From: Macrostomum lignano
Lineage: Eukaryota
Length of the DNA: 48,421 nt
Direction of reading: 5' to 3'
Assembly (NCBI GenBank): GCA_002269645.1
Contig: NIVC01003677.1
Coordinates: 1-48,421, forward strand
This document shows, piece after piece, positions 1 through 46,347 of the stretch. The notes under the pieces are model-generated. The model saw nothing but the letters and a program-made list of their open reading frames with translations, ran no database searches and was not told where the DNA came from. A program made the translations under genes and the position numbers. Numbering within the stretch: the first letter of the stretch is position 1; the number at the start of each line of letters is the position of its first letter.

Positions 1-3000
1 TTGATGAGCCGTGTTGCTGACAGCTGGCCCTGTGCCAGCTTCACATACTCCGCTACGTCGCAGGTTACTGCAGAAGTTCCCGAGCACCAGAAGCACTCGC
101 TCAGTCCCGACTCCGGATCCTCGACTCCGAATCGAACGGACAGCTCGCGCGCATTTTCCTGCAGATCGGTGTGGCCAGCGCTTGAGCTTCCGTCATGCAC
201 AAAGTCAAAGGCCGGCGGAGTCAAGTCGATCAGGTCGGGTTGCGAGTGGAAGAGTCGCGGAATTCCGGCACCGTTGATAGCCAGCACCGACACGTAGACA
301 TTGATTCCGTGAGTGAGCCTCACATCCGCCTTTGCCTCGTTGGCCGGTCCGAGCTGAGTAAACGGCAGAAGCTGCGTCCCACCACGAACTGTTCGATGGC
401 CCATAGAACTTCGCTGATGCCACTCTCGGAATCAGAGACGTCCCAACTGGCGTGCACAGTGCCGCTGTCTCTGACGCTCACCGAGTCCACATGAACGGGT
501 GCAGCCGTTGAGTTGTAGTCAGCAATTCCCACGTTGAGCACGGATACTGAGACCATGTCGATGGCTGACGATTGATATTAAACTCTTTGTAAAGGGGCAA
601 AAACTAAAGCATAAGCAAAACAAATGAAACAAATGACTAACGGAGAGGAAACTCACCCAGACCGGTGTGAGGTGACAGAGACTCAATGGAAACGGTTGAT
701 TCCGCTGACTCGGCAGTAAAGTAGAATATCTGCTTGTGCCACTCTACACCGGAGCTCACTCCGCCTAGATCGGTGAACAACCGGAACGTCTGCAGCATTC
801 CCGGACCCGAGACGAGACCGCCGACCGTAACTGATAGCGGGTCAGAGACGGGAAGATGAGACGCAAACAGTTGCATCCGATATCGACGTCCAGCTTCGGT
901 TGTCAAAGTCTGCGATACCCGACCGAACAGCAGCAGCACAGATTCTCCGTCCACGGCCATGGAATGTCCAATGCGGACTGCGATCGCTCGACCATCTTGC
1001 AAAGTCCAGCGTGGCGAAACAGACTCGAGTCCAGCTAGAACTATGTGGCTGAGTGGCGCTGAGCTCGGAGGTCGGAGCGCTCCTTCTTCGAAGCTCGGGT
1101 TACCGACATTAATCGGCCGGTGTCCAATGCGGTTGGCCGCAATAGCCGGTGTCGTGTCGATAGTCACTCCGGAGAAGTGATTGACTCTGAGCTGCGATTT
1201 GCCGCGTCGACCGCCTTTGCACGGCAGAAATAGGTGCTTCCATGATGCCAAGGTCCTTTCCAAGTAGCTCTCTGCTCGAACTTAACATTCTTCCAGTCGG
1301 CGATGTCGCATTTGCTGGCATCATTGCTGGAAGTAATGCAAGCAGAGTACGACTTGATGTAGGATTCTCGATCAAAGAAGCTGTGCCAACTGCATGACAG
1401 AGTCGTTTGGTCGCTGGAGTACTTTGAGTTGCTGTGACCTGTGAGAAATTGTTTATCTTGATTGAACTTGTTTAGGATATACTATAAATAGTTAGATAAA
1501 TAATTTGGGTTGACATAGGCAACTTACCAATACTATTGAACACCAATCCTGTAGACGGATTATCCAAGTCCAGTATGAACCCATCAGATGATACCGAAAC
1601 AGAGAGTCCGTTCTCATCGAGAGCGGTCACGGTAGAAAAGTACCGTTGACCTGGCTCAAGTTGCAGCCCATTGAATGTATAGGTGATGTTTCCAGGTGGT
1701 ATGACGACGTTTGCAACATCGTCCATTCCGATCTCACTGCCAATAGACACGCGGAATGTCAGCGGCGGTGCTTCGTTTAGACTCGTGAACTTATTTCGCC
1801 ACCCTACAGTCAGACTGTCATTACTGGTTATGAAATCGGTATCCCGTCGACTATCTGGTGACAACAGGTCCTTGACGCCGACACCGTAGTGTCGATTCAC
1901 TCGCGGAAAGGTCGGGTTGACCAGTACACCGTCCGAGCTGAACACGACGTACGTGTTGTGATCAAACCAAGCCCGAACAAACACCTTGTATGATCTAAAT
2001 ACATTGAGGCGACGCCCAGCTGTGATATTCAATGCCAAGAACGTCCTTAGACCGACGTCATGCCATACACGCTCGTGAACAGCGTCGTAGATACCCTTCG
2101 GCTCACTGTACTCAGCCAGACCTGCACTCACTTCATAACGAACAGGTGGTCGTCCCATTGCTCGACGGACTCGCCAAGTCGCTGCCAACAGAGACCTAGT
2201 CGGAGTTGTTTCTGCATCAGTTTGAGATTCTCCTCGAGGACCGAAGGCGGACACATCTAGAACCTCTACTTCGTTGTCGACGTTATCCACTACATCGACG
2301 GCTCGACACTCAGTTCCTCGGCAGGTCTGATGCTGCGGAGCGCACGAGCAGTGCCCGTAGCAAGTAGCTGCGCCAGCACACCGACGAAGGAGCCACAAGT
2401 GACCACTTTCCAGCACGGACAATGCCGCTTGAACTGGTTGACTGTGGAGACCGGCCTGAATCAGTAAATTACACACTTTCAAGTTTAAATAGTAGCTTCA
2501 CAGTAAATATCCAACTGACTATTACCTTGTTGACTGCAACAATGTGCACAATCAAGGACGTGCCCTCAGTTAGACTTCTCTTCAGTTCAAAGCTGGCCAT
2601 CTGAATTGGACCTTCGTGAGGATTCAGCGGTAGACCAACTCCTTCGTCACTGTGCGGAACCTCTGTGACCTAAATAACAAAAACAGGCAATGCAGTTTTG
2701 TGATAACTATTTCGCGGTAACTTTAAAATTCTTTGTGGTTCACAACCTACCGACAAAAGCTCCGATCCGAACCATGTTGTGCCCATCTGAATGGTGTAGC
2801 GATTGATTCCCGAGTGAGGATCGTGGAATCCCACCCAGCTGATGTTGACTTCGTTTCCGTCCCAAGTGAGGCCATCCTCGATGTGTCTGCCCAGCTGCAC
2901 GGCCGACTCTGTCTCGGCGGCTACGTGTCCTGTGATCGGAGGCGAAGTGTCCACAGCCACTGAGGCCGTCTGACGAGTGCATGCGTCCGCCAGGTTGCAC

Positions 3001-6000
3001 GACACGAGGTGAACAGTGTAGTTGGCTCCGTCTTTCAGATCGAGATCGCCGAATGTAAAGTTGCTCAGCAGACCAGGAATCTGCGATGTCAACAAGAGGT
3101 GCGCAGCATTAGTTTACGTCTAAAATTGAATAAATCAGCTGCAAAACTAGGTCAGATACCTTTACGGGCTCGAACGTCACTCGTCCGTTATCATGGTTAG
3201 ACAGAGAGATCCAGTGTTCTTTGATGCCGCTCTCCTTGTCAAAGACGCTCCACTCTACCACCATGATGTCGTCCAGGACGAGCCAGTTCGGCTCAATCTG
3301 ACCGAAAGTCTCGCTTGCTGAGAGAGCAGTCTCGATCTCGGGAGGTGTGTCGTCAATCAGAAACTTGCTCGACTCAGTCAATGTCGTAAGACCTAAATGG
3401 TTGTAAAAATGTTGTTCAAATATTCAGCAAAGTTTAGCACGATCGACGCTATGATTACGTCATGCCCGCCGCTCACCTGCTTTATTCACAGTTTCCACAA
3501 ACACCTTTAGACGTATGCCCGTTGGCAAGCTTCCAGAGTGTCGCACAAACTTCCTTTCGAAAGTTTTGATCCAGGCTATAACATCCGGCGAGTCAGACTC
3601 TTCGCGACCGACTCCCCAACGGTGATATGCAATGTCGGACTCTGGATCGTTGAAACCGTATAGCGAAAACTCTAGCGATGAGCTACACATGCAAAAGTAC
3701 AGCATGCATGTTTAGGCTATGAGTGGCTTTCAGCGTATCAAGTCATTATGATAAAATTGTTACTAAAAACACATTTACTCACCTTGATCGCAGGTACTGT
3801 TGGTTTGCGTCGCTTGAACCAATCAAGATGATTCCGTTCAACGGAGGTGTGGAATCCAAAATGACACCATCGGAAGACGCCACAGAACAGAGATCCCCCG
3901 CGTTGCAGCCTTTGACATTGACAAAGTACCTCTGTCCAGGTTGCAAACGCAGGTGGTCAATCTTTATACCTGAAGTAAGCAAAGTACGTCTGTATTCTTT
4001 GTTTAGAGTTAGTAATGAGCATAATTAGCTTCGTTTGACTTACTGTGTCGAACACCGACGTGAAGATACGGCATCACGTCTTGGCAACCTGGACATGATC
4101 CGATCGCCACCGAATAGTCCCTCACGTGACTGTGAGGATCATGGAAGTCGGTCCATTTTGCTGAGATGCCGTCCATATTGAACCGAAAGTTGCAATCGGT
4201 GCTGTTTGATACGGTCGGGTCGATATCGATCACCGATCCAGCTACTGGTGGACTTCTGTCTACGAGCACTGGCTTCGAGTGGTCGCTCGATATAAGTCCG
4301 GCAAAGTTCTCAGCTCTCAGCAGCACCCAGTAGTGCTGTCCGTCTCTGGAGTATGACAGCTGCTTGGTTGTCCACCAAACACACTCGCCATCTGATTCAG
4401 TGTACGGAATGACATCAGGACGACCGGGCGAAGATCCGAGACCGACCCAGTAGCGACGAATGCCCGCGACGGGGTCAGAGAATCTACCGTTCCAGCACAC
4501 TTCTTGGCCATTGCTGTTCGAGATTACATGCCGCAGACCCACAGAGATAGCTGCTGAGTGATTGGACTTAGGACCGTGCAGCACCACTCGGATCGACCGG
4601 GGCTTTGACCGACTCTCGCGACCGATGAAGTCGACAGCTGGAGCATAAGGCACAAGTCAATAGAAGCTCAGTAGTTTATTTGCGAAATTCAATTCTTCAC
4701 TTACCTCTCACCGAGACAAAGTAGACGTGACCTTCCTGAAGGACTCCCTTGAGCTGAGTAACAATCACACTGCGAGCACCGCCGACGTTTTTCCAATCGA
4801 TTAGGTCACAACCGGAGGCGAATGATCCAATGCAGTATTCGTAGTACTTTATGTCAGTCACGTGCGGCATGTCCGTAGACGTTCCAGACTCGAATCCTGA
4901 CCACTCGAGAAGAAACTCAGTCACAGATGACTGCAAACAATGAATGAATTCATTAAAACATCTACTTTGTAAAACTTACTGCAAAATCGACATTCAACTT
5001 ACCAGCATCTGATTGGCAAATCGTCCATTCACTGCGATCCTGCCTTCGGTTGCTACATCTCCAAGCACAGTGACGCCATCGCTGCACTCGCTCAACTCAG
5101 GCAACAGCTGAGTGAACTTCTCAAATTGCAGCAAAGTTTCGTTAGCGTGAATGCACACGTGATACCGAGTCCCTGGTTGAAGCTGAACTCCGGGAACGTT
5201 CACGAACTCATCCCGAGTAAAGCCGCCTGCGATCGCATTCGCGTGACTCGTCGGCCGTTTTGGCGGCTCAAGCAGAATTCGGTCATAGTAACCGGAGCCT
5301 CCGGTCCCACTGGCTGCTAGAACAGCCCATTCGTAGTTCTGTAAGGATTATATCCTATTTTGGTAACCATGCATGTATGCCTTTTAAAGCTTGTTTCGAA
5401 TGGAATCCCGTTCTCTCACCAAATATCTCAGCTGGGGCCACACCGCTGCAAGTCGAGCGCTCGAGTTTGAGTAGTCCACGTCATCGACCATCCATTGGTC
5501 ATTCTTCTCAAGCTTCACTGGCCCGATCGCGTCCATCACGTTCGGATTACTTATCAGCTTCGGGTCGTACGCGCTGCAGTCTCTCAGCTCTCTACTGTCT
5601 ACAGTCGACAGGCCTGCCTTGTTGAAGCAGCGAATCGCAAAACGGATGCATTTCGTCGATTTCAGAGGCCACGGTAGAGATACAGATTTAGTCTAAAGTA
5701 TAATAGTCAAATTAGGAGGTAGCTACATACCACCATTGTTTCATTGTTTCAAGTGAAGCAGCCACCTACCGAGTTACTCGAATCGAGTTTCAATTCCGTC
5801 CATTGTACGATGTTGGCACCATCGTGTTGCAATGACCACTGGTATCCGCTGATAACACTGCTTCCTGCTGATCCTAGCTGCTTGAACTCGTCCATCTGCA
5901 CTGTGATCTGAAAACAAAAGAAAATATTCTTGTTTAGACGCAATAAATGCATTTGTGACAGAGTATGTTGTTCAGCATACTGTCTGGTTGTCAGCTCAAG

Positions 6001-9000
6001 ATTGACACTCCACGCTCCAGCCACTGGGGACGTGTGCAGGACCACAAAGTCTGGAGCAGTCTCGACCTCTGAGCAAACTTCACCATGACAGAGCTTCATT
6101 CTCGATCGGTAAGTGGCCCCATCGATGAGGTGCAAATTCGTGACGAGGACCGTCTCGCCCGAGTGCGAGACGCGTCTAAACTCTTCCACTGTGATCCAAT
6201 CTAAAGCGAGTGGGTCAACACGGGAAGCAACTCAGTCTACTTGCAGATAAACAAGGAGAAATGATTTTTCTACCGTACCGTCTCCTCGCTTCAACTCGAG
6301 ACCCCAACTGACGTCGTGAAACAGCAGATCGAGGGGTGATTTCGGCTTTGTCCACTTCAAACCAACCGTGGACAAAGAGCTTTGGAAATTATCCGTCAGC
6401 GACCCATCATTGTCGGGTCTCCAGTTCACAGGTTTCAACTCGAGGAGGGGCTCTCGAGACTCGACAGTAACACCGCTTGACTCTGCAGAGACGCTTCCGA
6501 CCACATTCGATGCTGTTACTCGAGTAAAGTAGGTCTGAAGCGTAATCAAACAGAAGAGACATAATTTGAATGAATGAAACCATTTCGAGTCTGAATCGAA
6601 CGACTGTGTATAAGCTTGCCTTGAATACATCCAACTTGAGTCCGTCAAACTGATGTCGAGTTGCATTTGAAGGGAGGGTCACAGATGCGAGCTCCTTGTG
6701 CTGAGAATCCACAACCGAAACATGGAACTCGTTTGCGAATTTGAATCCGGTCCATCGCGACCTTAGCGAGTCCGATCGCAGCTGATACTGAATGTCGTGT
6801 GGTGTCTAAAATTGAGCATGTCAGTGTTTTCTTCGTGTACTCAAATTCACGCTAAAATACACAACTGGTATCTTTTAGGCTATCAAAGTACCACTTTACC
6901 CCGAGCATTGAGTCCGAGTCGATACTCGGATCCTCGTCAGTAACGAAACCGACACTGGGAAGTCGGTTGTTATGTACAATTGGCTCAGCGAATGCAACAG
7001 TTCTTAGCTGAGCTTCATTGGTGCATCGAATGGACACGTAGTATGTGTGATCGCCGATTAAACTCCAGTCAAGCTGGCTCAGCTCCAGAGATGCGCAAGT
7101 CACTGGCGTGTGACTGTGACTGCACTCAGGTCCTTGCTTGACCCTCTCGAAATGAACAATGTCTGTAGAGTGCTCCTTGCTGCCTATAAAATTAAACCAT
7201 GAGAACTAAGCGATGCATTGCCTTAATCTCCAGTATGAGATAACAGATTGACAGACACTAACCGACTCCGATCTCAAACTCGAGCGACTCGGACTCCGGA
7301 TCTACGAAGTCGCCCGCATCCCAACGGACTAACAAGTGCTCATTGTTGGTACTGACGGACAATGAGCCCGAGAAGCTCGGTGGACTGGTGTCTACAGTCA
7401 GTGGTCCGACACTCTAAAATGATACGAACAAACATTCACCGTTTCATAGCAAGCAGTCTAGATAAGTTGCAGTGTAAATCTCACCATGTTTGACGACAGT
7501 CCCGCTCTGTTTACTGCCGCTATTGTCAAGTAGATCTGCTGACCATCTTTCAAATCAATGTGGTCGAGAATTTCGCTAGAGTGTGTCGTGACTACGCGAT
7601 TGGCAAGATCAGAAACAGAGTCCTCGTTGCTCACTACTGACAGGATGGAGTGCCTCAGTCCGGAAACACTGTCGGAGGCAATCCAGCTTAGTTTCAGCTG
7701 AAATGCAGTGCCTGCTCTCTGATAAGAAGCTTCTTCTCAAAAATACTCAGCAATACACGCGCCTTACCCTGTCGTCCTTGGTGAGATAGAACTCAGTTCC
7801 AGCTGGTCCGATTTGCTCACAGAACTCTCCTTCGTGAGTGAGCACTACAGTGCGATTGAACTTGCTGAGATCAAGTGCCAGAACTCCACTGTCCGCCATC
7901 ACGGTTGCTCGAGCTCTGAAAAAGAGACGCTTTCCATTATTAAAGACCTCTGATCACAGGAGCTAATTAGCAGACTGTTGGCTCTACCTGCACGTCTCAT
8001 TATCGTTTAGAAGTTTCTGTCTGCGACCAAGGTCGGTCAGGTACCAGAGCTCCTGCGAGCTGGCGTCCAGGATGAGTCCTGGACGGACTCGAAGACTCTC
8101 GATGCTCAACTCGCTCACTTCTGGCCTTTGATCCGTGATCAGGACTCCGTCAGAGCACACAGCGGCAGATGGCTCCATCGCGTTGTTGAAAGCGACTACC
8201 GTGACGAAGTACCGACCAGGACCAGGAGCCTCCCAGCTCGCCTCAAGACCCGTCGTCTCTTGATGAGTTGCGACTCTGACTGACAGGATACTCCGAAGCC
8301 GTATCTGTACATTCGTACTCCGCTCTCGGGATCAAAGAAGCCGCTCCAGTGCGCCGTTAGGTGTCGCCCGTTCTGGAAGTCGACCTCTTCATCGCCAGGC
8401 GCGCCGTCGAACACGTGGCCAGGATGAGGAGCAGACAAATCGATGCTAATCTTCATCACGCTGCTCGCGACCAACTCCGCTCCGTTTGTAACTGTGAGTC
8501 GAATGTGCAAATCGTGGTTGTGCTCCGTTGTGGCATTTGTGTTTGGCGATGCCGCAAAGAATGAGTTGTAGCAGCCAGTAGCTTGAGTGCAGTAGCAGTT
8601 GTCTGGTCTCTCGGAATCTCTTTGGCACAGCTGGAAGCAATCCGGCACTTACAAATCATTTGCCTGTTTCTACAGTCATTTTTTAATAAGCTTTCTTACC
8701 GAAGACTGTCGAAATGTCTCCGTCCTTCCATGTTGGAGTACATCTGCACAATCTCGTCAGTGTGGTTGTCGAAGATCTCCCAGAGCACAGTGTGCAAGCC
8801 GCTGTGCAAGTCGGACGCGGTCCAGTGAGCTCTACAAACGGGGCAAAAATGTCATGGCACTCGAGTCCATATCAGCAGTTTTTGCATTCAAACGGACTCA
8901 CCTCAAACTGTGTAGGTCTCTGCTGTGGTGCACAACGAGCCCATCGACGCCTCTGTTAGTCAGACTGAGCGTCCCTAACTCGGCAGGTGAGGAGTCGATG

Positions 9001-12000
9001 TGCATGAGGAAGCTGTTCACACGGCTGTTGCCCATCACATCCTCGCCAATCACCCAGAACTTTGCTGACTCGCCGTCTCGTCTATCGAAGCGAAAGCTCT
9101 GCATCTGGGCGTGAATGTCGGTGGTGGTGAGCCACCGGCTTTGATCCGGCTGTTGCAGACTGCGACCACCGACCGCGTCCACTCCGAACTGGGACGCGAA
9201 GCGCACAACTCCGTGCACGTTGTCGATCGGGTGGATGCTCCGAGGTCCGGAAGTCTGATCGTAGCCGTCACCGTAGAACTCCGGCACATGCTCGATCGGT
9301 AGCAGAAAGCCTTGACCTGTGTGCACCTCGTTGATCAGGTTGTCCGTCCATCGGAACGCGACGTTCCGTCAAGCCGTCGAAGCCACCACAATCCTCTATT
9401 GTTGACGGTATCGTCTACACCGAGAGGATAGCGCTCGTCCCTGCTTTCCACGCTCGACGAGTTATCAAAGATAAAGAAGCGTCTGCTGCGTCTCACATTC
9501 TTGATCGAGTTCCTGACCGCATCGCGCACCGTCACCACAACAGTGTAGACCGACGGCTCGTCGGGAGGCAAGTCAAAGTGAACACTGAACTCTCGGTTTC
9601 CGCCATTTCGTCTCTCTTCCTCGCCCTCGCCATTCAAATCAATGATTTTGTGCTCAGAGCCCGCCATCTCGTTCTCCTTCAGCACCTCTCCGACTTTGTG
9701 CATGAGCTTGAGCTCAATGTCGTACTGCAGCACTCCAGCGTGATCGTCTCTCCAGCCTCCGAATTTACCGTTGATTTGATTCTATAAAAGTACGTTAGCG
9801 CATTCTTAGATATGTTTCAACGATCAAAACATGTCATTTCAAGCCTCATACCTGCTTGGTGAAGGCTTCGCTAAGCTCAAGCATTCGCTGGTCGAATGGC
9901 TGAGTGCAGGGTCGAGCTCCGTGTCCCGCCACTGTGCAGTGGTACGGCAGGCTGTAGTCAAACACGAATGTTCCAGCCTGAGTAAACGACTCTCCGGTGA
10001 GAAATCTCGGATGCGTGGCTCCTCTGGCGTCGAGGTCAGCGACAGTGACGAAGCCGCCGTTGTACACCGAGTACGTGTACTTGAGCGAGTGTCCGGACTG
10101 CAGCTGCCAGCCGGCCGGAGGCAGCTGGTTCAGCTGTCCGGTAAAGGCGCGTTCTGCGAGCTTCGGGTTAGACGGACTGATCCCAGTCTCTTCCAGAGGA
10201 CCGATCGAGTTGTCGGGAAAATTCTCTGCAATGAAGATGCGGCACTAAGCTTACCTAGCCGAAAGTATAGCTAGGTACTGTATGTCCACGTGTGTGAAAC
10301 TCACGGTTTCCGGACAGCACGAAAACGAAATTTTCTCGCACAAGGCCGATCTTGTAACCGGACGGTGGGATGAAGTGTTCGCGAGGACCCGGACTGGATA
10401 TTGTGGGCTTGAAGCGGCTTGTTGCTGTCCACTCAAGCTGGATTTTCCTGTTTGGAGCTGACAAGGTGAATATTTCAGTGAAAAATAACTGCATTAGCGT
10501 ATGGCTATCAGATGGCTATTGTTTTGGATCACTTACCTGGTTTAGTATTAATATAGTTCACCGAGTTTGGTGATTTATGGAAGTCAATTGTAACATCGTC
10601 CTTCGGTGCTGAAAAAATCGTTAGGAAATTTTATATCTTAAAAAAACTATGAATTTCTAAGGCTCCAGGCATCTACCTACTGGTTCCATCCGGAGGAATT
10701 CTCACTGTCATTGTCGCAGTCAGTACCGTTGGCTTCGTGACAACTGAAAGTCAATACGGTATGCTAGTATATCCAAGATGAATCTTTTTTATGTTTCAAT
10801 TCTGCAAATCCAGGTTGTCTTATTGTGGTTTGTTTACTTTTTAGACAGTCCCTCGCTCCAGGTGTCGATGTGAAGCCGGCATCGCACTGGCACTCCGTGT
10901 GATACCCGTTGCACACGCCTGGAAAGCACAGGTTGTGCTCTCGCCTCCACGAGCAGGTTTCTGCAGTTTAATTCGAATCTATGACGACTTTATTTTAACC
11001 CTCAAATGTTTGTCTTAGGCTTTGGTAAACTATTACCTATAGGTGGGAACTCCATACGGAACTTATCCGAGCCCAAAGAGTCAGACCGAACTAGAGGGTC
11101 TCTTCTCAGGAGGGGGCAGAGTAGCTCAGGTGTTAAGACGTGACTTTCGCTTTTTTCCATACAAGGATCACGAGGCGAAACCTCAAGGCACAGACAGTGT
11201 TCACGACAGAGAAAGTCTTGGCAGTTGTAACAGCCTGTATGAGCACGTGCCACTATAGGTATGTCTCATATGTGTGCTCAGAAGTCAGCGCAATCAAAGT
11301 ATTGTATCAGATACTTGCTGTCTCACTCTTTGGCAGCTCTCCAAAGGTCCCCTCAATGTTCAGTTTGTTACAACAAGCTCATGGTTGAGCCGTGAAAGTG
11401 AGGCCTAATTTTAACTCACCAATGCAAGCCTTCCGATCGCTACTCAGCTTGTACGCCTGACCCTTTGGTCCGTGATCGAACATGCAAATCTGGCAGGTCA
11501 TCGTCTCTATCGCGCTCGGCAAATGCGTGCAGTAAGTCAGCGCGCAGAACGGAACTTGTGGACACACTGAAATTGGGTTTACGTACGGATCGTCTGTCTC
11601 TGCATGCACGTTTCTGTGACTTTTAAATGAAGCTTTACACAAGCTATGAGCCACCACTCACAGTCGCAGCGGGGACTGTAGTGAGTCGGATTGCAGTTGG
11701 AGCAGAAGTCCGGACTGTTGCAAGAGCCGCCATTGGGGCAGTACTGCAGGCGGCCGAAGCAGATTGCTGGAATAGATAAGGAAGTTTCGATTAGAGACAT
11801 TGACTACTGGGCACAGTAGTGCGTTATGTACTTTCAGTATCTTTCGATTTAGAATATAAAACTATTTATTACCTAATATGGATGGAACTTGTACAAGTTC
11901 ACGAACAATGACCAATGTTTTATTATTACTATTTTGGTTACTTAAAAATGTATCAACGGCAATAATTAGTAAGGCTTGACTCTAATGACCTGCATACTGC

Positions 12001-12989
12001 ATCCAGGTAAAACAATTCTTCGTTAATCCCAATTTGGCTTTACATATAGCTGAAAAACTTGAATAAACCTTGAGCTTTTCAAATAGACAAGATATTTGCT
12101 TGTTTGCTTGACTATCTGTTCACTGCTTTGGAAAACGTTTGCTTCCAACAATAGAAGAAAGGGGCAGCAAAATCTAGAACACCAGTTTACCCTAAAATTA
12201 CCCGGCTAGTACAGAAATCTAGAAATCTGTAGGTCAAGTTTCGTTTGCTACAGAAGGAAAAAAAGTCTTCTGACCGAAACCCAGACGTGAATATTCTACT
12301 CGTAAATGCACTCACCGCGTAGACAGGACGGCTCTCCAGTATAGCGACTCCAACCGGGACAGCAGTCCTGATAATTGACTATAACCGTTCGAGAGTTCTG
12401 CCGTCTTCGCCACCAGCTGCCCCGTCTGTTTTTTGTAATTTCAACAAATGCATAATTAGTAAAAGTTCAAGGTGTCTAGACAAATAAGCAACAGCAAAAA
12501 CAACGCGGCAATCGTTCGTACGATCGATAGTATTGCGTCTTGCTTCTCTGATAGGTGCACAGGTTAGATCGAGTAGACCGCTTGGTTACTCGAGTCGTAT
12601 TGTACAGCTCCTCGAGGATGTCGGTCTCGGCGTACTGGAAATTGTCGCGCATTGACGTTGGCGAATCGACAAACTTCAGATCGTCTCCGCCGATGTCAAA
12701 CAAACTGTCTGTCTCATTGAAGCCGAGACAGCCGCTGTGGGAAGGATTTTAGGATTTGCGGTGCTGTGGTACCCATGGAACTAGCTAACTAGCTAACTAA
12801 CAAACCAACCAACTAACTAACTAAGTAACTAAATATTCTAAAACGAAATGTTTCTTTAGGTATATATTAGTCTATAATGATAATATTGATTAGTTTTAGC
12901 GTATTTTGAAGCCAAAATCGTAAGTACAAAGTATTTGTCAACCCTCACCCGATCAGAACGGCCAGTAAAATCAGTCGATTCGTCAGCAT
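1..12989 (-). CDS. Giant secreted multidomain protein (signal peptide, EMI-like, EGF-like, many FN3/Ig-like repeats, DUF642-like module); ~33 exons, >3,100 aa, 3' end outside the window
   Basis: Manual splicing with phase-consistent junctions. First exons: 12989-12949, 12734-12522, 12425-12316, 11766-11662, 11566-11420, 10960-10838, 10743-10681, 10608-10537, 10457-10305, 10225-9852, 9781-8902, 8831-8700, then ~21 more down to position 1 (most introns ~60-100 nt). The N-terminus reads MLTNRLILLAVLIGGCLG-FNETD (signal peptide). Recurrent motifs: W.GF.DPESGI..Y, V.A.N.AGL, S.SDG(V/F).LD.TPP. Needs correction of six 1-nt deletions (see findings). Confidence 0.9.
545..1115 (-). other. DUF642-like / galactose-binding-fold module inside the giant protein
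   Basis: VGNPSFEEG...W...AVDGESVLLLFGRVSQTLTTEAGRRYRMQLF...EWHKQIFYFTAESAESTVSIES...AIDMVSV follows the N.SFE / A.DG / Q...T..G..Y / F.A / ID.V pattern. Confidence 0.6.
10838..11766 (-). other. Three Cys-rich/EGF-like modules (exons 4-6 of the giant gene)
   Basis: ICFGRLQYCPNGGSCNSPDFCSNCNPTHYSPRCD; CPQVPFCALTYC...CQIC...KACI; ETCSWRREHNLCFPGVCNGYHTECQCDAGFTSTPGARDCL. Confidence 0.7.
12316..12560 (-). other. EMI-like domain coding segment (exons 2-3 of the giant gene)
   Basis: Spliced translation LCTYQRSKTQYYRSRGSWWRRRQNSRTVIVNYQDCCPGWSRYTGEPSCLR, matching the C...CCPGW...C pattern of EMI domains. Confidence 0.7.
12780..12832. repeat. Short (CTAA)n-type microsatellite in intron 1 of the giant gene
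   Basis: ctaactaacaaaccaaccaactaactaactaagtaactaa seen directly. Confidence 0.7.
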
Positions 12990-13498
12990 GACATTAAGCA
13001 GTCGGTAATTCTGACAACGAAACCGACACGAGAAGTTAATGTCGTTCAAATAGCCGAATTTGTACAGTCAAATTTTCAGTTATAACTTTCTGGCCTTCTT
13101 TGAGAGCTTTATCTCTAACTGCTAAGAAATTTTGGCTCTCGCTTTTGATATTAGCCTTTGGCTTGGTCAAACAGATAACATTATCAGTTGAAATTGATTC
13201 GCCGAAGAAAAAAACTAACAACAGAGCCTCTGTGTACTCCTCTGTGCCTGGTCTATCACTACAGAAACTTTCTATTTGGACAAGTTATATTCCAAGCCAA
13301 TTATTTCGGAGCATGCTTGGTTCAGTATTATAGAGTAGTCGATGAGAAAAGTTCACTGCACAGGTGCTAAAAATGGGTGATTGGAAAGTGTTTATACATT
13401 GTAGCTGCCTAAATATTAATTGGCGTGTTAACATTGGTTATACCGGTGCCAATATTGATGTGTATGGAAATAAAATTGACGCAAACTGTTCTACGATT

Positions 13499-15755
13499 GT
13501 TGTAAAAAGCAGTAATATTGATGTAAAAAGCAGCAATATTGATGTAAAAAGCAGTAATATTGATGTAAAAAGCAACAATATTGATGTAAAAAGCAGCAAT
13601 ATTGATGTAAAAAGCAGCAATATTGATGTAAAAAGCAGTAATATTGATGTAAAAAGCAGCAATATTGATGTAAAAAGCAGTAATATTGATGTAAAAAGCA
13701 GCAATATTGATGTAAAAAGCCACAAGATTGATGTAAAAAGCAGCAATATTGATGTAAAAAGCCACAAGATTGATGTAAAAAGCAGTAATATTGATGTAAA
13801 AAGCAGCAATATTGATGTAAAAAGCAGTAATATTGATGTAAAAAGCAGTAATATTGATGTAAAAAGCAACAATATTGATGTAAAAAGCCACAAGATTGAT
13901 GTAAAAGCAACAATATTGATGTAAAAAGCAGCAATATTGATGTAAAAAGCAGCAAGATTGATGTAAAAAGCAACAATATTGATGTAAAAAGCAACAAGAT
14001 TGACGTAAAAAGCAACAATATTGATGTAAAAGCAACAATATTGATGTAAAAAGCAACAATATTGATGTAAAAGCAACAATATTGATGTAAAAAGCAACAA
14101 GATTGATGTAAAAAGCAGCAATATTGATGTAAAAATCAGCAATATTGATGTAAAAACAACAATATTGAAGTAAAAGCAACAATATTGATGTAAAAAGCAA
14201 CAATATTGATGTAAAAATCAGTAATATTGATGTAAAAAGCAACAATATTGAAGTAAAAATCAGCAAGATTGATGTAAAAAGCAACAATATTGATGTAAAA
14301 AGCAACAAGATTGACGTAAAAAGCAACAATATTGATGTAAAAGCAACAATATTGATGTAAAAAGCAACAATATTGATGTAAAAGCAACAATATTGATGTA
14401 AAAAGCAACAAGATTGATGTAAAAAGCAGCAATATTGATGTAAAAAGCAGCAATATTGATGTAAAAAGCAGTAATATTGATGTAAAAATCAGCAATATTG
14501 ATGTAAAAAACAACAATATTGAAGTAAAAAGCAACAATATTGATGTAAAAAGCAACAATATTGATGTAAAAATCAGTAATATTGATGTAAAAAGCAACAA
14601 TATTGATGTAAAAATCAGTAATATTGATGTAAAAAGCAACAATATTGATGTAAAACGCAACAAGATTGATGTAAAAAGCAGCAATATTGATGTAAAAAGC
14701 AGCAATATTGATGTAAAAATCAGTAATATTGATGTAAAAAGCAGCAATATTGATGTAAAAAGCAACAAGATTGATGTAAAAAGCAACAATATTGATGTAA
14801 AAAGCAACAATATTGATGTAAAAAGCAACAATATTGATGTAAAAATCAGCAATATTGATGTAAAAAACAACAATATTGATGTAAAAATCAGTAATATTGA
14901 TGTAAAAATCAGCAATAATGAAGTAAAAAGCAACAATATTGATGTAAAACGCAACAAGATTGATGTAAAAAGCAGCAATATTGATGTAAAAAGCAACAAG
15001 ATTGATGTAAAAAGCAACAATATTGATGTAAAAAGCAACAATATTGATGTAAAAAGCAACAATATTGATGTAAAAATCAGCAATATTGATGTAAAAAACA
15101 ACAATATTGAAGTAAAAAGCAACAATATTGATGTAAAAAGCAACAATATTGATGTAAAAATCAGTAATATTGATGTAAAAAGCAACAATATTGAAGTAAA
15201 AATCAGCAAGATTGATGTAAAAAGCAACAATATTGATGTAAAAAGCAACAAGATTGACGTAAAAAGCAACAATATTGAAGTAAAAATCAGCAAGATTGAT
15301 GTAAAAGCAACAATATTGATGTAAAAAGCAACAATATTGATGTAAAAGCAACAATATTGATGTAAAAAGCAACAAGATTGATGTAAAAAGCAGCAATATT
15401 GATGTAAAAAGCAGCAATATTGATGTAAAAAGCAGTAATATTGATGTAAAAATCAGCAATATTGATGTAAAAAACAACAATATTGAAGTAAAAAGCAACA
15501 ATATTGATGTAAAAAGCAACAATATTGATGTAAAAATCAGTAATATTGATGTAAAAAGCAACAATATTGAAGTAAAAATCAGCAAGATTGATGTAAAAAG
15601 CAACAATATTGATGTAAAAAGCAACAAGATTGACGTAAAAAGCAACAATATTGATGTAAAAGCAACAATATTGATGTAAAAAGCAACAATATTGATGTAA
15701 AAGCAACAATATTGATGTAAAAAGCAACAAGATTGATGTAAAAAGCAGCAATATT
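13499..15755. repeat. 21-bp minisatellite, consensus AATATTGATGTAAAAAGCAAC, roughly 105 units, runs into the assembly gap
   Basis: Direct tandem units with AGC/AGT/AAC/CAC variants and some 20-bp units. Confidence 0.97.
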
Positions 15756-16753
15756 NNNNNNNNNNNNNNNNNNNNNNNNNNNNNNNNNNNNNNNNNNNNN
15801 NNNNNNNNNNNNNNNNNNNNNNNNNNNNNNNNNNNNNNNNNNNNNNNNNNNNNNNNNNNNNNNNNNNNNNNNNNNNNNNNNNNNNNNNNNNNNNNNNNNN
15901 NNNNNNNNNNNNNNNNNNNNNNNNNNNNNNNNNNNNNNNNNNNNNNNNNNNNNNNNNNNNNNNNNNNNNNNNNNNNNNNNNNNNNNNNNNNNNNNNNNNN
16001 NNNNNNNNNNNNNNNNNNNNNNNNNNNNNNNNNNNNNNNNNNNNNNNNNNNNNNNNNNNNNNNNNNNNNNNNNNNNNNNNNNNNNNNNNNNNNNNNNNNN
16101 NNNNNNNNNNNNNNNNNNNNNNNNNNNNNNNNNNNNNNNNNNNNNNNNNNNNNNNNNNNNNNNNNNNNNNNNNNNNNNNNNNNNNNNNNNNNNNNNNNNN
16201 NNNNNNNNNNNNNNNNNNNNNNNNNNNNNNNNNNNNNNNNNNNNNNNNNNNNNNNNNNNNNNNNNNNNNNNNNNNNNNNNNNNNNNNNNNNNNNNNNNNN
16301 NNNNNNNNNNNNNNNNNNNNNNNNNNNNNNNNNNNNNNNNNNNNNNNNNNNNNNNNNNNNNNNNNNNNNNNNNNNNNNNNNNNNNNNNNNNNNNNNNNNN
16401 NNNNNNNNNNNNNNNNNNNNNNNNNNNNNNNNNNNNNNNNNNNNNNNNNNNNNNNNNNNNNNNNNNNNNNNNNNNNNNNNNNNNNNNNNNNNNNNNNNNN
16501 NNNNNNNNNNNNNNNNNNNNNNNNNNNNNNNNNNNNNNNNNNNNNNNNNNNNNNNNNNNNNNNNNNNNNNNNNNNNNNNNNNNNNNNNNNNNNNNNNNNN
16601 NNNNNNNNNNNNNNNNNNNNNNNNNNNNNNNNNNNNNNNNNNNNNNNNNNNNNNNNNNNNNNNNNNNNNNNNNNNNNNNNNNNNNNNNNNNNNNNNNNNN
16701 NNNNNNNNNNNNNNNNNNNNNNNNNNNNNNNNNNNNNNNNNNNNNNNNNNNNN
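15756..16753. other. Assembly gap (~1 kb of N)
   Basis: Run of N. Confidence 0.99.
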
Positions 16754-18330
16754 TCAGTATCAGCAGTCTGTGCAGTGTTCGCTAACTGCGTATCGGCTGG
16801 TACCAGTTCGGAATCAGAGCCGACCGTAGTCACACGCTGGGCTCCATCGGGTGACTCTGTAGCAGCGATTTTAGTCCCTCCGATGGAACTGATTGTTGTC
16901 GACAGTGCAACCATCTCCCCATCGCGCTTTCTGCTGTGCCGAATGTACCTTTCCACTGAGCTCTCGCTTTTGTGTCCGTAACTGCGCTGATATCCCACAG
17001 GGAGACTCCGGCCGTATTCAACTCGGTTGCCAATGTAACTCGAAGACAATGCCCAGTATAGGCTTTGCTTAGTTTGGCCGCTTCTGAGATGACACACATC
17101 AAGTTTCCGAGTGTGTTGACGCCGATGCTTTGGTTTGCATGGGTGCTTGCGCCTGTGCAAACCGGCTTTAGTGATCAGCCCGCCCCCTTTGCTGTCTCTG
17201 TGCATCTGTGTGGGGTGGGGGCTGGCCCCCCCCCCTCCGCCTGCTAGCCTTTTTAGGTGAGCCTCTCACCGCGTTTTCTGACTCAATTTGCGCGCAGCTC
17301 TCCGCTTGAGTTTTTTTTTTTCAATTTCTGCTTTTATCTCAATTTTTTTGCTTGTAACTCGTTATACTCGTAAAATACATAGCTTGGAGGTCGCTTTTTC
17401 GCTGTGCGCCTCCCGCGCGTTGCTCGCCTTGCTCGCCAATTGTCTCTGTGTCTCTTTGTGTCGGGCTGGTCACTAAGTACCTGCTTAGCGAAATACCAGG
17501 AGTCGGCTAGCCCTCGCAATCTAGGACGTAGGAACAGCAAAGAGCTTGGCACCCTTCTCTGCTCTTTGCTTCTTCGATCTTCTTCAGGTAGAGATCCACG
17601 CACTCATAGGGACATCTGCTTCTGGCTTTAAAGACTTTCAAAACCCACTTTTGACCATAGATATTTCAAGCGCTTGCTCTCTGACACTCTCTGACAAGAA
17701 ACGTATTATTTTTAATGTCGTTGCTCCAATCATTGCTGCACGCTTCAAATGTCTATGGCCAAACCACACTGAGCAAAATACTTCAGCAAAAATCAAAGCG
17801 AGCCAGAATCTCAACTCAGTCAATAGGCCTGCGAACAAAAGTGGATAGCAAGCGCGTAGTACACCTCCCGTTGAAGAATGGATCATTTCGGTCCATTCGG
17901 TTCATTTCGGTCCAGAAGGGATCACTTCAAAGTAGCGGCGTTGCTTTTCCAAATCCTCTGTCTCCAAAGCACAGAACGGTTTCACGGAGCCACCTAACTT
18001 GATGAACATTGGCGGCGGTGGCTTTGGTTTGAAGATTGGCCGTTCCGAAACGTTGATCCTCGATGATATACTGATTCCACAGACACGAAGTAGATAGCGG
18101 AATAGACCAGACTGGATGTTGAATATCGACTGTCGCTGGATCGCAGGGGTAGCTCTTGCTTGACAGAACCTCTCGCTAAACTTACGAAGCACCAATTTTC
18201 TTGCACTAGAACAGACCGGCGTAATTGTCCAATTGCATAAGATCCATTTCATTGATCTCAGCTGAGGAGCTTCAACTTCATCGGCGTCCAATTGAATGAG
18301 ATCGTCAAGCATGCATTGCATTGCGGTTGT
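16754..18330 (-). mobile_element. Degenerate Crypton-type (DUF3504) tyrosine-recombinase transposon
   Basis: Colinear motifs across several frames: LRKF...SIFNIQSGLFRYL; LETEDLEKQRRYF; GLLTELRFWLALIF...GHRHLK; RCPYECVDLYLKKI; LFLRPR...DSWY; GVNTLGNLMCVISEAAKLSKAYTGHCLRVTLATELNTAGVSLWDISAVT / GHKSESSVERYIR (HxxR, second His and catalytic Tyr of tyrosine recombinases). Confidence 0.8.

Positions 18331-29691: not shown

Positions 29692-46347
<16,656 letters not shown>

Follow-up and report, generated by a model that had tools for sequence, protein, structure and literature searches.

A Macrostomum lignano gene for a giant, predicted secreted FN3-array protein and the unnamed animal family around it

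The gene and its single-base deletions

We analysed a stretch of 48,421 nucleotides (nt) from the flatworm Macrostomum lignano (assembly GCA_002269645.1, contig NIVC01003677.1, positions 1 to 48,421 of the forward strand; this whole stretch is called the window below), the left end of which carries most of a gene for a giant, predicted secreted protein built largely from fibronectin type III (FN3)-type modules. The left 13 kb has the appearance of a eukaryotic gene with many exons: all three minus-strand frames contain numerous stop-free segments. In the first homolog search a crude concatenation of these segments retrieved a protein cluster of M. lignano, a free-living species, together with "uncharacterized" proteins of ~3,100-3,400 aa from amphioxus, oyster and scallop. 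Splice mapping was guided by the full-length paralog model P0012 (3,349 amino acids, aa), using exact-match blocks and forcing each junction to GT..AG and to an exact frame fit. The coding region mapped in this way occupies the minus strand of window 1-12989 and comprises 32 exons and 31 introns, all of them (31/31) GT-AG. Most introns are 67-100 nt long, the longer ones measuring 148, 214, 229, 459 and 549 nt. The start codon is the ATG at window 12989 (minus strand), which is the first ATG after in-frame stops, and the reading frame has no stop at window base 1, giving 3,111 codons inside the window. The spliced protein is 98.97% identical to P0012 with zero stop codons and represents residues 1-3111 of ~3,350 aa, with ~238 C-terminal aa lying past window base 1. 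A previous reading made from the letters alone (the sequence-only reading) had placed here a protein of more than 3,100 aa that was still open at the window edge, and this observation is confirmed at its original position because the spliced model has 32 exons, starts at ATG 12989 and is open at base 1. As regards identity and architecture, we hold with high confidence that window 1-12989 is the 5' 93% of an M. lignano gene for a fully secreted protein of ~3,350 aa. All coordinates given below for parts of this gene are window positions on the minus strand.

The reading frame is continuous only after bridging six 1-nt deletions relative to intact paralogs, which lie between 9365/9364, 8702/8701, 8262/8261, 5995/5994, 1171/1170 and 394/393. 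The GenBank model of the locus, PAA50296.1 (P0009, 1,285 aa, BOX15_Mlig000537g7, "hypothetical protein"; window 657-5980), is 100% identical to residues 1469-2752 and is a fragment between two of the six deletions: its start is the first Met after the frameshift at residue 1460, and it ends in ITSPE followed by a TGA stop which was created by another frameshift. Because this model starts and ends at frameshifts, the deletions are present in the deposited assembly and fragment the public annotation. Other members of the M. lignano cluster are similar fragments of 694-2,160 aa.

These deletions are probably residual long-read consensus or assembly errors in a duplicated genome, on which reading the gene would be functional. 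This is suggested by their uniform 1-nt size, by their homopolymer sites (at least four of the six are in 2-3-nt homopolymers), by the lack of nonsense codons, by the 31 intact splice sites and by a 998-N gap in the scaffold. A uniform 1-nt deletion type is typical of long-read consensus errors in PacBio-era assemblies. What weighs against this reading is that six frameshifts within a 9.3-kb coding sequence could be the sign of a recent pseudogene in a set of many near-identical copies. In that case the deletions would be real and this duplicate would be in decay, the function being left to intact paralogs such as P0012. The truncation of the GenBank model at two frameshifts would agree with such decay, as would the redundancy of the M. 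lignano copies, which would permit the loss of one, and an indel-to-substitution ratio of ~1:10, which is also expected under neutral decay. However, every one of the six events is a 1-nt deletion, mostly in a short homopolymer, with no insertion and no longer indel beside them; nonsense substitutions are absent, the copy is 99% identical to intact ones, and the scaffold that holds the gene also holds the N gap, and we therefore regard a pseudogene as unlikely. Under the preferred reading of assembly error, the locus is a practical example of how residual single-base errors fragment giant genes, with 1,285 aa annotated of ~3,350.

Domain architecture of the protein

The predicted protein has the domain order signal peptide, Cys-rich N-terminus, a beta-rich family-specific region of ~600 aa, FN3 array, six-Cys knot and a domain of choice-of-anchor-C/DUF642 type, the last of which sits four modules from the C-terminus. 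The signal peptide (residues 1-18, MLTNRLILLAVLIGGCLG; 12722-12989) is the sole hydrophobic segment and is split by intron 1 (12948-12735). The Cys clusters of the N-terminus extend over residues 73-244 and their pattern is conserved across phyla; in the alignment of the modules at residues 122-246, 15 of the 19 invariant columns are Cys. Both the signal peptide and the Cys-rich N-terminal modules had been called correctly from the letters alone.

The same reading had labelled the N-terminus EMI-EGF, and this label survives only in part. The EMI-like stretch (residues 70-121, C73 ... CCPGW106-110 ... C119; 12317-12568) is recognised by its Cys pattern, C..C..C..YR..CC.G[WY]..C, which is kept in orthologs, although the flatworm protein has lost two of these Cys and retains 4. 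The flatworm N-terminus did not match Pfam EMI (PF07546) even at E=5, and there was no match at E<=1 among 11 orthologous N-termini (flatworm and 10 others), which leaves EMI with the CC.GW pattern and without support from a hidden Markov model (HMM). The EGF part stood weakly and for one unit: the Cys-rich modules at residues 122-246 (10839-12316) end in an EGF-like unit (residues 204-245, CSWR..C.PG.C...C.C..GF...C) which is invariant among orthologs, whose profile gave weak matches to the EGF domains of TGF-alpha and epiregulin (E 0.006-0.05), and for which Pfam EGF families gave sub-threshold matches on the N-termini (E 0.003-0.09). The N-terminal Cys-rich modules are each bounded by phase-1 introns (introns 3-8, all phase 1). 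Phase-1 introns at module borders are the classical signature of exon shuffling.

The family-specific region begins with a domain of ~160 aa which we call ntA-N, or ntA (residues 246-404; 9978-10841). It is conserved in ~60 representative orthologs, has no PDB or Pfam match by profile and scored 9.6% in hhalign against the profile of the FN3-type modules. It is followed by an N-terminal beta-sandwich block, ntB (residues 405-844; 8451-9977), which is the most conserved hallmark region and consists of two divergent FN3-type modules (residues 405-545 and 700-844; hhalign against the module profile 97.5% and 95.2%) on either side of a beta region of ~150 aa, the second module holding a CYC..C cluster. 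A profile of ntB found no sequence match in the PDB (best E 0.04, spurious), and in a word-indexed homolog search it found two 140-aa metagenome fragments only. AlphaFold2 (AF2) modelling of ntA and ntB together with four sequences was unreliable, with a mean predicted local distance difference test score (pLDDT) of 43.7.

The central FN3-type array (residues 845-2360; 2435-8450) was delimited by an HMM of the module (i-Evalues 1e-11 to 1e-34), by hhalign and by profile comparison with the PDB. It holds twelve modules, at residues 845-941, 1032-1119, 1124-1233, 1234-1330, 1331-1436, 1437-1542, 1694-1799, 1804-1907, 1912-2017, 2022-2123, 2128-2232 and 2236-2360, and is broken by two divergent segments (residues 942-1031 and 1543-1693) which are not FN3-like by these tests. 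The array is followed by the six-Cys knot (residues 2362-2410, RRC..C.G.C.CAP...C....C, with Cys residues spanning 2379-2403; 2285-2431), the six Cys of which are invariant across four phyla and which did not match the FN3 module profile in hhalign. Beyond the knot lie three further FN3-type modules (residues 2411-2529, 2530-2641 and 2646-2748; 1182-2284), the lectin-like module (residues 2755-2925; 560-1164) and two more FN3-type modules found by the module HMM (residues 2926-3027 and 3035-3111; 3-559), the second of which is cut by the window edge. In paralogs two further FN3 modules stand C-terminal to these, including the sole Pfam-significant fn3 match (P0001 residues 2948-3020).

The motifs W.GF.DPESGI..Y, V.A.N.AGL and D.TPP, by which the repeats had first been noticed, are real and periodic, with a spacing of ~105-110 aa. 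Seeded with six modules, an HMM recovers 17 copies of ~104 aa, and profile-profile comparison gives residues 405-545, 700-845, 1233-1330, 1327-1440 and 2405-2532, three of which overlap HMM matches and 2 of which are new, bringing the total to about 20 modules for the window and about 22 for the whole protein. When a profile of 38 modules was compared with the PDB, it matched FN3 domains of titin (4e-22), Dscam (3e-11), contactins and fibronectin. The alignment to FN3 keeps the strand-B W and the strand-F motif Y.V.V.A.N..G, and it places W.GF.D.ESGI..Y on W..P..DGGS.I..Y of titin. AF2 modelling of residues 2362-2925 gave a pLDDT of 63-86 over three consecutive modules, for which Foldseek returned three-domain FN3 tandems (contactin FN1-3, neogenin and fibronectin) at E~1e-10 over ~330 columns. 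The ~2,500 aa of tandem beta-sandwich-type modules suspected by the sequence-only reading thus prove to be FN3-type by profile comparison with the PDB and by AF2 with Foldseek, and amount to ~2,100-2,500 aa in the window. No in-window module passes the Pfam fn3 model (PF00041, gathering threshold 25 bits) singly, only cumulative whole-protein scores doing so; searched as single modules, 13 of the 38 gave matches, the best at E 2.5e-4. There is also no Pfam or NCBIfam family for the module subtype. Profiles and predicted structures together indicate that the modules are a divergent subtype of the FN3 fold and not typical PF00041 members.

The lectin-like module corresponds to the sugar-binding-like module of the earlier reading, and the matches found for it agree with that description, below curated cut-offs. 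It matched TIGR04362 ("choice-of-anchor C") over model positions 5-157 of 157 at E 1.3e-9 and 38.5 bits (curated cut-off 120) and Pfam DUF642 (PF04862) at E 4.8e-4 and 20.4 bits (cut-off 27), and 12 of 15 orthologous modules matched TIGR04362. Its profile had no significant match in the PDB (best E 0.9, the CBM-like domain of Vip3, CBM being a carbohydrate-binding module). Homology of residues 2755-2925 to choice-of-anchor-C/DUF642 domains is likely on these matches, and we refer to this module below as the CBM-like domain. Two points weigh against this assignment: both scores are below the curated cut-offs, and the AF2 model of the domain with four sequences was unreliable (pLDDT 24-56), the fold being taken from sequence homology. 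Plant DUF642 proteins are secreted proteins of the cell wall, for which in vitro binding to cellulose and to pectin methylesterase has been described (PMC6651502).

Besides the signal peptide, no hydrophobic segment which could serve as a transmembrane (TM) helix or glycosylphosphatidylinositol (GPI) signal was found in the flatworm, amphioxus, oyster and scallop proteins, and in all homologs the chain stops within a few residues of the last FN3 module. A membrane-anchored receptor was rejected for this lack of a TM or GPI signal. The composition of the protein is ordinary (S 10%, T 6.5%, P 4.9%, K 2.7%), with no low complexity. Conservation across phyla is uniform along the whole mature protein, at 21-52% identity, and each module can be paired by position with its ortholog in other phyla. 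We also considered the RGD at residue 1388 as an integrin-binding site and rejected it because orthologs do not keep it.

The animal family and its bacterial relatives

The family was searched with an exhaustive HMMER scan of 1.84 billion representatives, using the distinctive N-terminal 1,127 aa as query. The scan returned 1,090 matches, 138 of them representatives at E<=1e-30. The ntB hallmark was found in 61 representatives besides the window protein, and in more than 40 long representatives the hallmark HMMs occur in the same order (Cys-rich N-terminus, ntA, ntB, FN3 array, Cys knot). Full-length alignment gave collinear orthologs of 3,000-3,500 aa, in which the CBM-like domain is optional and is followed by the terminal FN3 modules. 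The organisms named here are those of 20 orthologs which were looked up, and the taxon census is incomplete: they include the calcareous sponge Sycon, the sea star Acanthaster, the brittle star Amphiura, the acorn worm Saccoglossus, the amphioxus Branchiostoma, the annelid Owenia, the nemertean Lineus, and oysters, a clam, scallops and abalone. No vertebrate, arthropod or nematode name was among these 20. Oysters, amphioxus and Macrostomum have several paralogs each; the M. lignano cluster contains 15 proteins, and a second M. lignano paralog stands at 65% identity.

All of the orthologs looked up are "uncharacterized" or auto-named, one oyster N-terminal fragment being called "draper-like" by NCBI. 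A literature search on 30 family identifiers (LOC, Mlig, BRAFLDRAFT and UniProt) found no paper, and neither single exons nor full-length proteins matched a Pfam or NCBIfam family for the whole architecture, the only signal being a cumulative weak one for fn3. Two expectations of the sequence-only reading are borne out here, namely the resemblance to uncharacterised giant FN3-like proteins of marine invertebrates, which are now seen as collinear orthologs, and the absence of a named family with this architecture from Pfam, NCBIfam and the papers searched by identifier. The sequences are thus already in databases as predictions, and the family is unnamed and unstudied. For its identity and architecture we consider it very probable that this is an undescribed, ancient animal family with a fixed domain order, found from sponge to amphioxus.

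The automatic names in UniProt include "Alpha-L-rhamnosidase" and "Alpha-glucosidase", which are attached to fragments of the 65%-identical paralog (P0044 / P0208). We do not read an enzymatic function from these names, which are probably an artefact of weak Ig_Rha78A_N matches by FN3-type modules; no catalytic domain was seen in the scanned proteins.

A second subfamily (P0073-P0091, including Sycon P0075, Saccostrea P0081 and Haliotis P0084) has all of the hallmarks except a detectable choice-of-anchor-C/DUF642-like module. Either a late gain of this domain or its repeated loss could explain the difference.

Intron positions were compared after mapping the orthologs of a scallop (Argopecten, L001, gene 1001-17408) and a clam (Mercenaria, L002, gene 1001-75795). 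Nineteen of the 31 flatworm introns lie at the same alignment column and in the same phase as a clam intron, where ~0.2 would be expected by chance, and 11 of the 13 scallop introns are common to the clam; this sharing supports both the orthology and the gene model. It was also observed that the clam and scallop orthologs differ four-fold in intron number (52 vs 13) and nearly five-fold in gene length (75 vs 16 kb). Since 11 of 13 scallop introns are at clam positions despite the difference between 13 and 52, massive intron loss in the scallop lineage is indicated. Within the FN3 array the introns lie inside modules and are of mixed phases, the module borders are mostly intron-free, and one exon spans ~3 modules. 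Because most introns are shared with the clam, this pattern is ancient, at least spiralian. It fits an array which predates its introns, and is silent on whether the array was inherited or acquired.

The same FN3 subtype was also found in giant surface proteins of marine bacteria, 2,300-6,100 aa long, which carry 15-30 copies of it and come from metagenome-assembled genomes (MAGs) of Acidimicrobiia and Marinimicrobia and from cargo of the type IX secretion system (T9SS). Examples are the Acidimicrobiia MAG protein MFN8035841.1, the Marinimicrobia protein MBC8402241.1 and the T9SS-sorted P0042, and the carriers in the HMMER scan are P0040, P0042, P0064, P0067, P0106 and about 30 other representatives. 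The consensus of the subtype is V.VD.TPP..G.V.DG...D.D.Q.S...L.A.W.GF.D.ESGI..Y.W.IGT.PGG.D...W..VG......L.L..G..YY..V.A.N.AGL. Against an HMM from the flatworm, amphioxus, oyster and scallop proteins, the bacterial modules score 85-105 bits each; with the related 38-module profile, no canonical animal FN3 domain scores above ~16 bits. The best pairs of bacterial and animal modules share 48-51% identity, compared with 46-50% for orthologous modules across animal phyla and at most 32% for pairs of modules within the flatworm protein. A bacterial link of the repeat module, which had been raised as a possibility, is therefore seen in these proteins at up to 51% identity. In a 5,560-aa metagenome protein (P0041, ENA), a C-type lectin domain occurs together with 11 divergent copies of the module subtype.

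By sequence, the closest relatives of the two most distinctive parts of the protein, the FN3 subtype and the CBM-like domain, are bacterial and plant domains. One reading of this is that a marine bacterium passed the FN3-subtype/CBM-like core, as an adhesin-like block without introns, to the animal stem lineage or to an early animal. The core would then have been fused to shuffled exons of EMI/EGF type, gained introns, been kept as an ancient matrix component and later been lost in some lineages. This reading is prompted by bacterial modules being as similar as animal orthologs and by an array without phase-1 introns at its borders; we consider an ancient horizontal origin of the core, in either direction, improbable. 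Transfer from animals to bacteria, or plain vertical descent of an old FN3 subtype, may also account for the sharing. The family offers a clean case of FN3 sharing between animals and bacteria, having both a sharply defined subtype and a second domain of bacterial/plant type.

Known systems, proposed function and surrounding sequence

The flatworm protein was compared with known animal proteins that contain FN3 arrays (fibronectin, tenascins, usherin, contactin/Dscam and titin). Like these it is composed of long tandems of FN3 beta-sandwiches of ~100 aa, and like tenascin it has a Cys-rich/EGF-like N-terminus before the array. However, its modules differ by a D-x-T-P-P-x-x-G start and the W.GF.D.ESGI..Y signature, and its array introns are mid-module and of mixed phases, whereas those of the known animal arrays are phase 1 at module borders. 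By Pfam and hydrophobicity it is without the fibrinogen globe, LamG/laminin, Ig, phosphatase and TM parts of such proteins, and it adds the choice-of-anchor-C/DUF642 domain and ~600 aa of family-specific N-terminal domains. The nearest working principle is that of the FN3-array matrix proteins (tenascin, fibronectin and usherin), but the protein is a member of none of these families.

The giant bacterial FN3/Ig-like proteins share the FN3 subtype in 15-30 copies, with no dedicated Pfam model in either kingdom, but are without the animal hallmarks (Cys-rich N-terminus, ntA, ntB, Cys knot and CBM-like domain) and join the module to Kelch/PQQ propellers, PKD or T9SS sorting domains. Their repeats are also homogenised (median identity 54% inside one protein); the animal modules, by contrast, are individualised by position (median 30%). 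As for the CBM-like domain, plant DUF642 proteins are two-domain proteins of ~40 kDa and bacterial TIGR04362 domains come with a sorting signal, whereas the flatworm has a single such domain inside 3,350 aa. The EMI proteins (EMILINs, multimerins and MEGF10/Draper) resemble the flatworm N-terminus in the position after the signal peptide, in CC.G[WY] followed by Cys-rich/EGF-like sequence and in phase-1 exon borders. They differ in usually having 6-7 Cys where the flatworm stretch has 4, and the flatworm protein has no gC1q, coiled coil, EGF array or TM segment downstream.

On the basis of this architecture, we tentatively propose a secreted scaffold with a glycan-binding module as the most likely function. 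The protein would be a long, rod-like extracellular scaffold, of the order of 100 nm if its modules are extended. Through its Cys-rich N-terminus it would multimerise or be tethered to further components of the matrix; length, elasticity and partner-binding surfaces would come from the position-specific FN3 modules, and the CBM-like domain near the C-terminus would bind polysaccharide or glycoconjugate. The setting could be the apical or interstitial matrix, or the glycocalyx, of soft-bodied marine animals.

Several points weigh against this proposal. The function of the family would be derived from domain logic alone, multimerisation of EMI type is speculative given that EMI has no HMM support, and, to our knowledge, choice-of-anchor-C domains have themselves no established role in binding sugars. 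It should also be noted that the CBM-like domain was undetected in the second subfamily of paralogs, to which the only sponge sequence belongs; it can therefore not be essential to the core role of the family.

The presence of a domain of a type that is otherwise bacterial or plant in a secreted protein could also point to innate defence. The protein would then be a soluble pattern-recognition or agglutinating molecule, in which the CBM-like domain binds microbial or algal polysaccharide and the FN3 rod and multimers cross-link or present microbes. The occurrence of the family in marine, microbe-exposed invertebrates would suit this role, as would the several paralogs in oysters, amphioxus and Macrostomum. 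However, immune families are usually lineage-expanded, reshuffled and fast-evolving, whereas length, module order and introns are here conserved across phyla, and there is a single glycan-binding-like domain in 3,350 aa, which is absent from one subfamily. A role in defence appears doubtful on these grounds.

A giant, secreted protein with protein- and carbohydrate-interaction modules might likewise be a component of glue, mucus or cuticle, options already named by the sequence-only reading, for example of the flatworm duo-gland adhesive or epidermal mucus. M. lignano does secrete very large adhesive proteins (Mlig-ap1 and Mlig-ap2). However, the window protein has an ordinary composition and none of the low-complexity, Ser/Thr/Pro-rich, Lys/Arg-rich or rapidly varying repeats that would point to such a component, and one-to-one orthologs occur from sponge to amphioxus in animals without duo-gland adhesion, suggesting a more general role. 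A scaffold is preferred over a glue or mucin because conservation is uniform, there is no low complexity or compositional bias, and the modules have positional orthologs; we consider glue, mucus or cuticle very unlikely.

If the family is as it seems, the individual modules of a giant matrix or surface protein, and to a large extent its introns, have been retained from sponges to amphioxus, and inventories of the ancestral animal extracellular matrix miss a large and old component. M. lignano is open to RNA interference, in situ hybridisation and transgenesis, making the function directly testable.

Upstream of the gene, from ~500 bp before the ATG, lies a 21-bp AT-rich minisatellite (ATTGATGTAAAAAGCAACAAT, ~108 copies, 90% match, window 13496-15755), which runs directly into the 998-N scaffold gap (window 15756-16753); because of the minisatellite and then the gap, the promoter-distal context of the gene is not readable. 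Further along the window, an open reading frame (ORF) or exon on the plus strand at 43644-44102 encodes a CUB domain, which passes the gathering score of Pfam PF00431 (E 1.4e-10), and is probably part of another gene, for a secreted or membrane protein. The intergenic DNA at window 22820-43528 is unusually rich in long micro- and minisatellites, including (AGAT)141 at 32525-33090, 744 bp of (TGTC)n at 37424-38167, repeats of 14-, 20-, 29- and 33-mers, and 38 copies of a 15-mer at 42954-43528 which read as a KDHGT-repeat ORF.

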